Source: Zygophlyctis sp. KS116
Lineage: Eukaryota > Fungi > Chytridiomycota
Assembly (NCBI GenBank): GCA_054661495.1
Contig: BAAFSQ010000014.1
Span: forward strand, 1 to 32,000
Reading direction: 5' to 3'
Length of the DNA: 32,000 nt
The notes below the pieces were generated by a model. That model was not told the DNA's origin and did not search any database. It saw nothing but the letters and a program-made list of their open reading frames with translations. Both the position numbers and the translations under genes were made by a program. Shown here one piece after another: positions 14,381 to 17,965 of the stretch; within the stretch, counting starts at the first letter, position 1; each line of letters begins with the position of its first letter.

Positions 14381-15706
14381 ATGGCTCCTATCCGACACTG
14401 TATTAAAACAGACAATACTAAAAGTGGGCTATTGGAAGCTGGAATTGGTAAGTCGACCCTCTTTTTATATGTAGAAAATAATGTTTTATCAGTCGGAAAG
14501 AATATTCAAGTAGATTCGGACACGCTGCAACTAAGTAAGATGCACTGGCGGTTAAGGGACGTATTGATCAGGTACTTGGATGGTGATTCTCTGGTAGATT
14601 TCCACTGTAATAAAAGTATTTTGGCAATACAATCAAAATATTTCATGTCGGCATTGGTTACATTTCCTGGAGAAAATCAATGCATTAGTATGATCGACTT
14701 ATCACAAATTCCCTTTGATGGACACATCTTCAAAATAATTCTTGAATCATTTTTTAGATCGCAAAGTGATGGTGATTTTGAACTTTGGACACAACAAGGA
14801 ATTTTTGGAAAACTATTTTATGCTGCAGAGTATTTTGCATTTGACTCATTCTGTAATGCATCAAGGAATTATTTAAGTTGCAGAGCATTTAATGCATTAT
14901 CAAGTTTAAAAACACCATTGGAGATTTGGGAAAAAATACATCTTAATAATCTGCTTCAGATTCTTGTTCAAGAAGATATGGAAAACTCTGAAACTGGAAA
15001 ATCCTTTGAAACATTTTTAAGGCTTTATCTGATTAGCGACTTGAAATCTTTTATATTTAGTATTCCGGTTAGCTTTCTTTGTAGAATTCTTAAAATTGGC
15101 CTAGAATACAATGATGAAAAATCTGCACTTCTTATTTACATCGATGCATACAAATTATTGGATGATAATGATAAAAAGGAGCTAAAATCATTTATACTAT
15201 GCTATTTTGATACTAAAATTATTATGCAGTTGGGAGAGGCATTATTATTAGATCATGCAGATTATGAAATCCTTAATTCTAAAACAGTAACAGGAAGACT
15301 TGGCCATCCTCTGCAGTTATCAAAATTTTTAGAATTTAAAAACAGAGACTTCAAGTTTATAGAGGTTGATTTTGAATATGGCGGACATCGGATGCTTTTA
15401 TTACTACGCATTAGTAGAACAGACTCTAAATATTTAGAGTGTTTTCTATATCGAGATATTATACAAATGCACGATTGTATACCAGAATTTGAATTTACAT
15501 TATCAGATTCGCAAGATCGTGGTTTGGTGTCTCGCCAAGTGTTAAAATGTCCAGCTTACATTCAGCATACTAGGATTCGAATGGAAAATAAGAGGCCAGT
15601 GGCTCATTGTGGATGGTCCAAACTTATTCGGAGATCAGAATTGAAATCTAATTCAAGATACCACCTCTCACTATTAATTGTTGGGCTTTCGGCGCTTGAT
15701 CAATAA
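14381..15706 (+). CDS. BTB/POZ protein with C-terminal MATH/TRAF-like domain
   Basis: BTB-like FHCNKSILAIQSKYFMSAL and LFYAAEYF; MATH-like FEYGGHRMLL..YLECFLY..FEFTL..GWSKLI. Possible in-frame 27-nt intron 14448-14474. Confidence 0.65.
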   Translation: MAPIRHCIKTDNTKSGLLEAGIGKSTLFLYVENNVLSVGKNIQVDSDTLQLSKMHWRLRDVLIRYLDGDSLVDFHCNKSILAIQSKYFMSALVTFPGENQCISMIDLSQIPFDGHIFKIILESFFRSQSDGDFELWTQQGIFGKLFYAAEYFAFDSFCNASRNYLSCRAFNALSSLKTPLEIWEKIHLNNLLQILVQEDMENSETGKSFETFLRLYLISDLKSFIFSIPVSFLCRILKIGLEYNDEKSALLIYIDAYKLLDDNDKKELKSFILCYFDTKIIMQLGEALLLDHADYEILNSKTVTGRLGHPLQLSKFLEFKNRDFKFIEVDFEYGGHRMLLLLRISRTDSKYLECFLYRDIIQMHDCIPEFEFTLSDSQDRGLVSRQVLKCPAYIQHTRIRMENKRPVAHCGWSKLIRRSELKSNSRYHLSLLIVGLSALDQ

Positions 15707-16008
15707 TAAAAGAATTAAAGACATTTAAACAAGCTCTACCGACCGTTAAAACTGCAGATCCTTCGCGTTTGAAAATGTCCTTGTCTGGTGTGTTTGTCTT
15801 GAGTGCTGTCCGTACTCCCTCTGGTAGTTTTGGAAAAAGTCTTGCTTCTGTTCCTGCTACTCGACTGGGCGCAACAGCAATTAAGGGGGCTATAAAGTCT
15901 GCTGGATTATTATCAGCAGATATACAGGAAGTTTATATGGGAAATGTGATTTCAGCATCTATTGGACAGGCTCCAGCGAGGCAGGCAGCAATATTCGCAG
16001 GATGGTAT
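15366..16008 (+). repeat. 643-bp direct repeat, copy 1 (BTB 3' end + intergenic + thiolase exon 1)
   Basis: Reads identical to 17323-17965 (offset 1957). Confidence 0.95.
15775..16008 (+). pseudogene. ERG10: Orphan duplicated thiolase exon 1, truncated 4 nt into intron 1
   Basis: Identical to 17732-17965, but the sequence after the donor GTAT is foreign and no further thiolase exons follow. Confidence 0.85.
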
Positions 16009-17322
16009 AATTTTGTTGCTGGTCAATATTAAAATTGCGATTATCATGGTTAAGGCCGGTTATGTCACATTTAATCATGGTATTTCTTATTTTCTACAGG
16101 TAGAATTTTTCGAAAAATGAATGAATTTGAACCTTTGTTTGTGCAGTATCTTGATACAGAGCCTATTAAAGTTGACTCAGTTGGATGTATAAATATTGCT
16201 GATTTGATTAAAAAAGCACAGAAGGAGTTCTCACCTCAACTGGACGAATTTCCACTCAACAAGTTGACTCTCCATCGCTACACTGGCATCAAACTCAAGG
16301 GCGACATTAAAATCACTTCTCTTGTCAAGTCAAATGGGTTTATTAATAACTACGACAATCCACTTCTCATCAGATATGCTGATGATGTCCTTCCAGTCAT
16401 CAAAAAGGCTCACCATTCTGATGCCAGAAAGAGAAGATGGGATGAAATAAATCCTGTGCTGCTTGATGCTGCTGCAAAGAGTAAGAAGAAAGATAAGGAC
16501 AGTACAGCCTTTTCATCTCTGACTTGGAAAGCCCTCTTGCCTTTCTTTAACTTAGAATTGTATTCTCAACCTGTCAAAGTTGTCCCCACCGATGAAGTCG
16601 AATACATTCGAAACTATCTAATCAAAACTCTCAAGGGTCTGGGCAGTATTTTGCAAGAAAATGAATCCAAACGACTTTATTTCATCGCCCCTATACTCAT
16701 TTGTGTCGTGAATTTGTTTGGCCCAAATGACCAAGTTAAAATTGTCACTGGGGAAGATTTAAATGGTATCAATGTCAAGGCTAATGGACATTTTGAATTT
16801 ATGCTCAAAAGGAAAAACAAAATAGTTTGTATTGTTGAGGCTAAAAATTACGATTTGCTCAAAGGGATGGCACAAGATTTAGTTGGAATGGAGGTAGCTT
16901 CTGATGTGGATGACTTGGATGTGGTATATGGGATAGTAACCACTTATTCGGATTGGGTTTTTTTGAAAAGTCTGAATGACAAGGTACAGCAGGATATTGA
17001 TACACTTGTATTCGAATTAGAAGTTCCTACTCTTGATTCATTGAAAAGAATTGCTGGGAAGATTTATGCTATGCTTTCCGACGATTGATAAGCAAATCGA
17101 TTGTTTGATTTATGAAATAAATTGTTTTTTAGTCATCAACACAAGTTGAAGCGGGACGGATTCAATACTTTAGGAAATAGCCCCATGGACGTCCAAGTGC
17201 CCGAAAATACATGGAGTTATAATAGATAATACCAGATTTCAATCATATTCATTTAAATTTTTCAATACTTTCCTAAAGGAACGGTATCATCCGCCTATTC
17301 TGCTATTGAGGCTTTCTAGAGT
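16009..17322 (+). mobile_element. Inserted 1314-bp cassette carrying a Crinkler-type nuclease gene, flanked by 643-bp direct repeats
   Basis: Unique sequence between two identical host segments; intronless nuclease-fold ORF; no TIRs or LTRs seen. Confidence 0.5.
16117..17088 (+). CDS. Crinkler (CRN)-like effector: ubiquitin-like header + PD-(D/E)xK restriction-endonuclease-fold domain
   Basis: Header-like IADLIKKAQKEFSPQLDEFPLNKLTLHR. C-terminal NESKRLYFIAPIL, GHFEFML..CIVEAK, GMAQDLVGME, VYGIVTTYSDWVFL, IAGKIYAMLSDD, typical of CRN-associated REase domains. Confidence 0.8.
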   Translation: MNEFEPLFVQYLDTEPIKVDSVGCINIADLIKKAQKEFSPQLDEFPLNKLTLHRYTGIKLKGDIKITSLVKSNGFINNYDNPLLIRYADDVLPVIKKAHHSDARKRRWDEINPVLLDAAAKSKKKDKDSTAFSSLTWKALLPFFNLELYSQPVKVVPTDEVEYIRNYLIKTLKGLGSILQENESKRLYFIAPILICVVNLFGPNDQVKIVTGEDLNGINVKANGHFEFMLKRKNKIVCIVEAKNYDLLKGMAQDLVGMEVASDVDDLDVVYGIVTTYSDWVFLKSLNDKVQQDIDTLVFELEVPTLDSLKRIAGKIYAMLSDD

Positions 17323-17663
17323 TTGATTTTGAATATGGCGGACATCGGATGCTTTTATTACTACGCATTAGTAGAACAGACTCTAAATATTTAGAGTGTT
17401 TTCTATATCGAGATATTATACAAATGCACGATTGTATACCAGAATTTGAATTTACATTATCAGATTCGCAAGATCGTGGTTTGGTGTCTCGCCAAGTGTT
17501 AAAATGTCCAGCTTACATTCAGCATACTAGGATTCGAATGGAAAATAAGAGGCCAGTGGCTCATTGTGGATGGTCCAAACTTATTCGGAGATCAGAATTG
17601 AAATCTAATTCAAGATACCACCTCTCACTATTAATTGTTGGGCTTTCGGCGCTTGATCAATAA
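17323..17663 (+). pseudogene. Duplicated 3' fragment of the BTB/MATH gene
   Basis: The ORF 17349-17663 is identical to the last 104 aa of 14381-15706 and lacks the N-terminus. Confidence 0.8.
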
Positions 17664-17965
17664 TAAAAGAATTAAAGACATTTAAACAAGCTCTACCGAC
17701 CGTTAAAACTGCAGATCCTTCGCGTTTGAAAATGTCCTTGTCTGGTGTGTTTGTCTTGAGTGCTGTCCGTACTCCCTCTGGTAGTTTTGGAAAAAGTCTT
17801 GCTTCTGTTCCTGCTACTCGACTGGGCGCAACAGCAATTAAGGGGGCTATAAAGTCTGCTGGATTATTATCAGCAGATATACAGGAAGTTTATATGGGAA
17901 ATGTGATTTCAGCATCTATTGGACAGGCTCCAGCGAGGCAGGCAGCAATATTCGCAGGATGGTAT
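17323..17965 (+). repeat. 643-bp direct repeat, copy 2
   Basis: Reads identical to 15366-16008 and continues into the intact thiolase gene. Confidence 0.95.

Follow-up and report, generated by a model that had tools for sequence, protein, structure and literature searches.

In the genome of the chytrid Zygophlyctis sp. KS116, a gene for a predicted Crinkler-type nuclease lies between a BTB/POZ-domain gene (BTB) and ERG10, flanked on each side by an identical 643-bp copy of the DNA that it entered. We analysed this locus within a stretch of 32,000 nucleotides (positions 1 to 32,000 of contig BAAFSQ010000014.1, assembly GCA_054661495.1; hereafter the window), in which all the genes discussed are read on the plus strand. 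We think it probable that the locus is one member of a class of events in which a nuclease gene inserts with a long target duplication of variable length. With the same confidence, we consider the host genome to be the compact genome of a freshwater chytrid-like organism, in which a single-gene cassette (X) came to lie between BTB and ERG10 and about 650 bp of target (A) was duplicated, giving the arrangement A-X-A. The insertion is harmless, recurrent and transposase-free, but it is neither recent nor without precedent.

Structure of the locus and its empty site

Repeat A occupies positions 15366-16008 and 17323-17965. At this offset of 1957, the two copies are identical at 643 of 643 positions by position-by-position comparison and by self-BLAST, with the caveat that a short-read assembler could mask one or two differences between them. 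A is the sole direct repeat that self-BLAST finds across the 32-kb window, and both the anatomy and the coordinates given in an initial annotation of this DNA, made from its sequence alone, proved exact to the base. Each copy contains the final 341 nt of the BTB open reading frame (ORF), a 68-nt spacer (15707-15774 in the left copy), and exon 1 of ERG10 with 4 nt of intron 1. The repeats are therefore host-gene sequence and not borne by the element. The insert X (16009-17322, 1314 bp) consists of a 108-nt 5' flank, an intronless ORF of 323 amino acids (16117-17088) and a 234-nt 3' flank.

The left copy of A completes BTB (14381-15706; ORF of 441 amino acids; PF00651, E 1.3e-4), which has an ortholog in the empty-site contig described below, and ERG10, the gene for acetoacetyl-CoA thiolase, takes its upstream region and exon 1 from the right copy. 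Both neighbours are intact, as the initial annotation had stated. What is left over is a dangling copy of ERG10 exon 1 at the end of the left A (15775-16004) and a dangling 3' fragment of BTB at the start of the right A (17323-17663), the latter followed by the spacer and by the working exon 1 (17732-17961). The 5' part of ERG10 extends over 17732-18522, with a 27-nt intron at 17962-17988 and more exons downstream. Exon 1, from the ATG at 15775 to 16004 in the left copy, matches Thiolase_N (E 5e-17), and the downstream exons match Thiolase_N too; these exons were queried individually and not as a spliced protein, and the gene calls of relatives concur. X carries one ORF only in its 1314 bp, with no methyltransferase gene beside the nuclease ORF, and no inverted terminal repeat was found at its ends. 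It is thus not a classical transposon, in line with the earlier observation that transposase, terminal inverted repeats (TIR) and long terminal repeats (LTR) are all missing from it.

Outside A the sequences are unrelated, except for an imperfect match of 8/10 bases at its left edge (15356-15365 against 17313-17322). The same ten-base edge matches at 9/10 positions in a metagenome relative, and it may be either the decayed edge of the original duplication or a junction microhomology. In addition, an imperfect palindrome of 34 nt (30/34), within the coding region of BTB, is found 50 nt in from the left edge of A (15415-15448 and 17372-17405); it is not conserved in the empty-site relative.

The closest homolog of the X protein (92% identity) is encoded on scaffolds L011 and L012, which come from different samples of one lake metagenome project. 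Jointly they span window positions 14885-18558 at about 97% identity; each crosses one full A copy and X and enters the other copy, and their junctions are identical to those of the window. A contig from an unrelated estuary study bridges the junction between the end of X and A (17287-17579). Other read-derived contigs at the locus, none of them from an RNA run, are short and of low depth, and no joints or depth ratio were taken from them. The initial annotation had raised the possibility of an assembly artefact. In that case a single chromosomal A would exist, and X would have been mis-joined to it through a collapsed repeat. An exact repeat of 643 bp does exceed short reads. However, the window, L011 and L012 are three independent assemblies that follow the same path through the same junctions, both A/X junctions must exist somewhere while X has no other home in the genome, and the same architecture is found at many loci and in other species. 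We regard the artefact as very improbable; the A-X-A structure is real.

The state without the insert is found in a related contig, L069, about 71% identical to the window and collinear with positions 12048-20716. There, BTB stands directly beside ERG10, with one A, no nuclease gene and no repeat, and positions 3355-3942 of L069 align to both A copies. Consequently, A-X-A is a derived insertion with target duplication. The single-A state, for which the initial annotation had suggested looking in other isolates or the other haplotype, is thus present in a related species.

The dangling ERG10 exon 1 copy retains its GT donor, and a pyrimidine tract with a CAG lies 17 nt upstream of the nuclease ATG. 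The splice predicted from these signals (16005-16099) would create an upstream ORF of about 78 codons, whose stop lies about 13 nt before the nuclease start. Given this predicted splice, the duplicated ERG10 promoter could drive the nuclease ORF in X.

Recurrence of flanking duplications

If the insertion were one of a series, a possibility that the initial annotation raised, other genes of the same kind should also stand between long direct repeats of host DNA. We surveyed the genome (12.7 Mb in 1175 contigs), which holds about 14 paralogs of the 323-amino-acid ORF. Nuclease ORFs were considered testable when at least 1 kb of sequence was available on both sides, and the other ORFs of at least 250 amino acids in the same 177 kb served as controls. 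Direct repeats of local DNA flank 7 of the 11 testable nuclease ORFs, which belong to two nuclease families, and 1 of the 17 control ORFs, that one lying inside a nuclease insert (Fisher p = 0.002). Among Crinkler-type genes, the repeats measure 341 bp (92% identity) on C174, 245 bp (95%) on C27, and 167 and 112 bp (83% and 89%) on C198. The second family, which we call head-less, shows repeats of 543 bp (100%) around a gene of 300 amino acids on C7, of 401 bp (88.5%) on C199 and of 142 bp (95%) on C71. The C7 insert is 1400 bp long, and its repeat spans the 3' end of an aminotransferase gene and the start of the next gene.

Three loci of other chytrids have the same layout: a metagenome contig with a 73%-identical gene (L064; repeat of 344 bp, 85%), Globomyces pollinis-pini (L066; 144 bp, 100%) and a contig with a head-less gene (L110; 135 bp, 98%). 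The length of the duplication varies between loci, from 135 to 643 bp, and in all resolved cases it covers gene ends or spacer and leaves both neighbours whole. Recurrence was borne out both within this genome and beyond it.

Such recurrence also bears on generic copy-in repair, of the type of fork stalling and template switching or microhomology-mediated break-induced replication (FoSTeS/MMBIR). According to this explanation, a fork or break near BTB/ERG10 switched template, copied a nuclease-bearing stretch and re-entered about 650 bp behind, and the repetition of such events would reflect repair habits and survivorship, not the cargo. The window locus, without transposase, TIR, LTR or insert ends shared with other loci, is compatible with it; the 8/10 match where X ends and A starts could be the microhomology, and a palindrome stands 50 nt inside the left edge of A. 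Nevertheless, the 8/10 match may be a decayed duplication edge, repeats in the sampled DNA are much commoner around members of the two nuclease families than around other ORFs, the layout accompanies nuclease genes into other species, and two independent events share an exact, motif-defined insert end (see below). We judge copy-in repair to be rather unlikely.

Two Batrachochytrium loci (L065 and L067) were set aside as ambiguous, their repeats being 7.6 and 9 kb apart around several genes. At L065 (Batrachochytrium dendrobatidis, JAQIHF010000010.1), direct repeats of 957 bp (98%) at 2862-3815 and 10481-11435 bracket a 6.7-kb block with a Crinkler-type nuclease gene and four other genes. This block may represent the same process at a larger scale or an unrelated segmental duplication.

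Ten retropepsin loci had no flanking repeats within 1.5 kb. The genome contains at least 60 frames of 1100-1560 amino acids with a retropepsin domain, many of them on short contigs (e.g. C506, C457 and C344), which points to an abundant LTR-retroelement family breaking the assembly.

Age of the insertion and concerted evolution

The identity of the two A copies had been taken as a sign of very recent mobilisation. Comparison with the 97% relative contradicts this. Seven substitutions separate the two genomes in A, every one of them present in both copies, and the relative's own A copies differ at 1 of 643 positions, as against 0 in the window. If the copies had evolved independently from a time before the two genomes separated, 7 or more differences per genome would be expected; with 0 and 1 observed, they evolve in concert. 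Moreover, the proportion of synonymous differences (pS) between window and relative is 0.032 for X and 0.035 for BTB, while the relative differs at about 1-2% of flank and A bases and at about 3% across all of the sequence compared. Since the substitutions in A are shared and X has diverged as much as its flanks, the identity of A is not due to youth. These data show that the insertion is older than the split from the 97% relative and that the two copies have been kept alike by gene conversion. The locus thus offers a clean natural case of concerted evolution, between 643-bp repeats 1.3 kb apart whose intervening gene has not been deleted, and the persistence of the insert between converting repeats raises the question of what retains it.

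Copies held identical over time are also what would be seen if an extrachromosomal A+X circle had integrated by a single, Campbell-type crossover with the chromosomal A, excision and re-entry keeping the copies alike. The A-X-A anatomy is that of an integrated circle, and a motif-bearing contig, L075, has a terminal overlap of 111 bp. Against this stand the facts that such a circle would re-enter its own A only, leaving new targets with a different A unexplained, that the A/X junctions require a prior illegitimate event, and that no circle joints were seen among the short, low-depth contigs. Of the accounts based on real DNA structures, this is the one to which we give least credit.

Conversion has also acted within the nuclease gene. 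Within one 70-base patch of the ORF (16289-16358), the window and the 97% relative differ at about 40 positions (pS 0.64). The window version resembles those of L064 and L066, and the relative's version resembles the C7 and C239 paralogs; the patch is an ectopic conversion tract from another paralog, the relative having the changed version. Two other paralogs share a tract of 622 bases at 96% identity. From both tracts, ectopic conversion is common in the Crinkler-type nuclease family.

The proteins encoded by the inserts

The 323-amino-acid protein has no Pfam match, PF20147 included (E up to 1). Homologs abound in chytrids (Batrachochytrium, Globomyces, Dinochytrium) and diatoms, and one diatom homolog is labelled Crinkler family protein by its source. 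Four homologs (P0064, P0089, P0095 and P0105) bear a PF20147 head and match the C-terminal 68% of the protein (residues about 100-323) at 46-50% identity. The Crinkler-type label of the initial annotation is thus correct for the nuclease domain, homologous to that of PF20147-bearing proteins, and not for the head, which lacks the PF20147 match that strict Crinkler-head membership implies.

An AlphaFold model built from 31 homologs (pLDDT 84) predicts a head at about residues 1-90 and a nuclease domain at about 135-323. By Foldseek, the head resembles ubiquitin (TM 0.70-0.71), ISG15 and FERM F1. The body matches, in the PDB, Cas4 SSO0001, MGME1, Dna2, the nuclease domain of DrdV and mitoribosomal chains (E 2e-5 to 1e-2), the last of which we take to be REase-like. 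E227 is Glu in 30 of 31 homologs, E241 is Glu in 26 and Gln in 5, and A242 and K243 are invariant. The reading of X as an intronless gene for a ubiquitin-like head and a PD-(D/E)xK nuclease domain therefore holds on the predicted model, which displays both the fold and the triad of such enzymes, and DNA cleavage is the predicted function. In its genomic behaviour, this type of gene looks like a selfish gene, and its role as an effector is putative.

The head-less protein has the same fold and the same PDB matches by Foldseek, and its D...(E/Q)AK motif can be aligned with the equivalent residues of the window protein. BLASTP gave no match between the Crinkler-type and head-less families, and a profile-profile alignment, which lines up the catalytic motifs, is weak (E 0.016, probability 2.8%). 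The proposed kinship of the two families is hence based mainly on the PDB matches that both models share.

Insert ends and donor sequences

Some of the inserts have a defined end. The left end of the C7 insert is the motif (AGT)n-ATAGATAGAGCACCGAATGATACC (C7:80363-80391, equivalent to 2896-2924 of L027, our record of the C7 locus), which has 32 occurrences in the genome versus 0 in the control. Its exact 29-mer is present in 28 metagenome contigs (L072-L099). The outer edge of the motif is sharp in all cases, and the DNA on its far side is unrelated. Crinkler-type ORFs have the motif 80-310 bases upstream, both in this genome and in L068 and L087 and, less strongly, in Batrachochytrium. Head-less ORFs have it on their downstream side, in inverted orientation and 150-190 bases away, in this genome as well as in Globomyces and metagenome contigs. 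The inserts of L027 and L110, which belong to different organisms and lie in unrelated targets, are 82% identical from the start codon to the motif. In both, the outer edge of the motif is the junction with the duplicated target, and the insert end at ...GGTATCATTCGGTGCTCTATCTAT(ACT)n is clear. A shared end defined in this way is not predicted by random capture. As an RNA, the terminal motif has no Rfam match and no stable fold; it is a candidate for a cis-acting site or for the end of a mobile unit.

A fixed end with a repetitive tail suggests retroposition, namely that an mRNA-like unit was reverse-transcribed at the target by target-primed reverse transcription, with a second-strand nick hundreds of bases off producing the long and variable duplication. 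The nuclease ORF is intronless in a gene-dense genome with introns, in the head-less family the 3' end, with its variable (ACT)n tail, is constant, the 5' ends differ between inserts and the duplications vary (135 and 543 bp), and the genome has at least 60 retroelement polyprotein frames. On the other hand, the end of X has neither poly(A) nor a clear tail, the motif stands upstream and on the same strand in Crinkler-type units, which is the wrong orientation for a 3' tail, and no LINE-type (long interspersed element) reverse transcriptase was identified. The duplications of 140-650 bp are, besides, much longer than is usual for target-primed retroposition. Retroposition seems to us improbable, if slightly less so than integration of a circle.

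At the window locus, no common termini emerged from an alignment of all inserts, in which the homology between loci and species is confined to the ORF, from its start codon to its stop codon. The donor copy of X that the initial annotation had suggested looking for is missing from the assembly: BLAST of A-X-A found no second copy of the X flanks, and the other matches are paralogs aligned over the ORF only, at 66-84% identity (74% for the best paralog). An exact 30-mer of the X 3' flank had no match in JGI metagenomes.

Some further features of motif-bearing contigs are worth recording. L075 (JGI Ga0164295_10077790), a contig of 2.5 kb that carries the motif and the beginning of a gene, has the same 111 bp at both ends (2-112 and 2357-2467), as expected of a circle or of a tandem array with a 2355-bp unit. 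In L089, an ORF of 90 amino acids (2297-2566) is divergently paired with a head-less nuclease gene, and an internally deleted remnant of it persists in the C7 insert (L027 4035-4132). The resemblance of this ORF to GIY-YIG proteins is a by-eye impression, Pfam giving no match. Beside the C7 nuclease cluster, L027 also carries tandem genes for proteins with a coiled coil and a trypsin-like protease domain (27-362 and 1167-1502), in which only the 5' parts are still alike (86.5%).

Proposed mechanism and its weighing

How the insertion came about can be outlined as follows. Two strand breaks offset by several hundred bases, or a gapped break, would occur at the target; the cassette would be joined between the broken ends, and the single-stranded target would be filled in on both sides. 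In a genome nearly devoid of spacers, selection would then preserve an insertion only if it restored both neighbours, and such survivorship explains why only neighbour-sparing events are seen. We tentatively favour this mechanism, in which a linear cassette is end-joined at offset breaks and the target is filled in. Replicative template switching comes next, as a clearly less likely route. Two others, namely retroposition whose second nick falls far away and the entry of an A+X circle by homologous recombination, are each unlikely. The three routes put forward in the initial annotation (widely staggered nicks, integration of a circle and replicative template switching) are all among those weighed here. 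The encoded enzyme itself may make the breaks.

It is tempting to go further and propose that the chytrid nuclease genes of Crinkler type, with their restriction fold, move autonomously as selfish cassettes and form a eukaryotic counterpart of mobile restriction-modification genes. These would make their own offset breaks at new sites, some families would be delimited by a conserved terminal motif of 29-35 nt, the duplications, hundreds of bases long, would regenerate the neighbours and later undergo gene conversion, and the repeats would possibly let the unit amplify or loop out. The expansions of "effectors", those of Batrachochytrium included, would then be partly transposition-like. This extended proposal is possible, although we find it doubtful.

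Several observations weigh against placing the window locus in a class of nuclease-gene insertions. The linkage A-X-A rests on assemblies (the window, L011 and L012), with a repeat longer than short reads. The control set of the survey was small and taken from the neighbourhoods of nuclease genes. Within X, the best candidate for the terminal motif is GGTATCATCCG, a 10/11 match located 40 nt before the right end and lacking significance (nhmmer E 1.2). As X has neither a significant terminal motif nor a donor copy, its membership of a mobile class is based on its anatomy and its relatives. Finally, nuclease activity of the X protein is a prediction, and codon 212 (16750-16752) encodes Gly in the window protein where 29 of 31 homologs, including that of the 97% relative, have Glu (in the VEEDL strand). 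Taken together with the empty site, the recurrence and the shared insert end, these points leave insertion of a nuclease gene with a long target duplication as the explanation that we consider probable.

If it is right, the locus illustrates a harmless way for a gene to come into a genome that has hardly any spacer DNA. It would also follow that selfish mobility, and not selection for virulence, may account for part of the size of the large "effector" families of chytrids, including those of Batrachochytrium, a pathogen of amphibians.

Comparison with known systems

Mobile units located exactly at the junction of a tandem duplication, as X is in A-X-A, are produced by reversed-ends transposition of maize Ac and by duplications mediated by insertion sequences (IS). 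Those cases differ in having transposases, defined terminal inverted repeats and duplications of kilobases to megabases. Free-standing homing endonuclease genes resemble the chytrid units in being a single nuclease ORF with short flanks between host genes, in their patchy distribution, in ectopic conversion and in harmless insertion. However, homing endonuclease genes have one cognate site and do not duplicate it, whereas the chytrid units occupy many unrelated sites, each of them duplicated.

With the Crinkler (CRN) family, reported to be expanded in Batrachochytrium (PMC3161006, PMC5364385), the X protein shares a nuclease domain, 50% identical to that of the PF20147-headed P0064, and a ubiquitin-like fold of the head; it differs in that this head is not matched by PF20147. 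According to a 2026 paper (PMC12957317), AACRNL, a Crinkler-like ADP-ribosyltransferase (ART) gene, is a selfish genomic element in teleosts and spreads via neighbouring hAT transposons. Both AACRNL and the chytrid units are Crinkler-derived genes that multiply within a genome and not as secreted effectors. Unlike AACRNL, with its ART domain and its hAT carriers, the chytrid units have a nuclease domain, no transposon and long target duplications. We found no description of long target duplications around Crinkler genes, in a literature search of incomplete coverage.

The closest known system is the insertion of bacterial restriction-modification (RM) genes with long target duplication (Nobusato et al. 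2000, as cited in Furuta et al. 2010, PMC2853133). Furuta et al. reported duplications from about 30 bp up to 417/423 bp and suggested DNA breakage by the nuclease as a common cause (PMC2853133). There, as in the chytrids, a nuclease gene unit lies between long, variable direct repeats that align to a single copy at the empty site of a related genome, no other mobility gene is present, and the target is preserved because the repeats frequently extend across the start or stop of a gene (PMC2853133). The harmless mode of insertion that the initial annotation presented as undescribed has, consequently, a bacterial precedent, the insertion of RM genes being already documented as an event that creates long duplications of variable length and leaves the target gene unharmed (PMC2853133). 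The window locus has the repeats of more than 30 bp of unique target DNA, the empty site and the insert of less than 20 kb without mobility gene that characterise this class, and it lacks the pair of restriction and modification genes. As there is no methyltransferase in X, we regard the locus as an analogue of the RM insertions and not as a member of their class. Further differences are that the chytrid locus is in a eukaryote, that its cargo is Crinkler-type with a ubiquitin-like head, or a head-less relative, and that the duplications reach 643 bp, with copies shown to evolve in concert. If our reading is correct, eukaryotes too have a form of gene mobility that had been described for bacterial RM systems alone, which would point to a property of DNA-breaking enzymes themselves.

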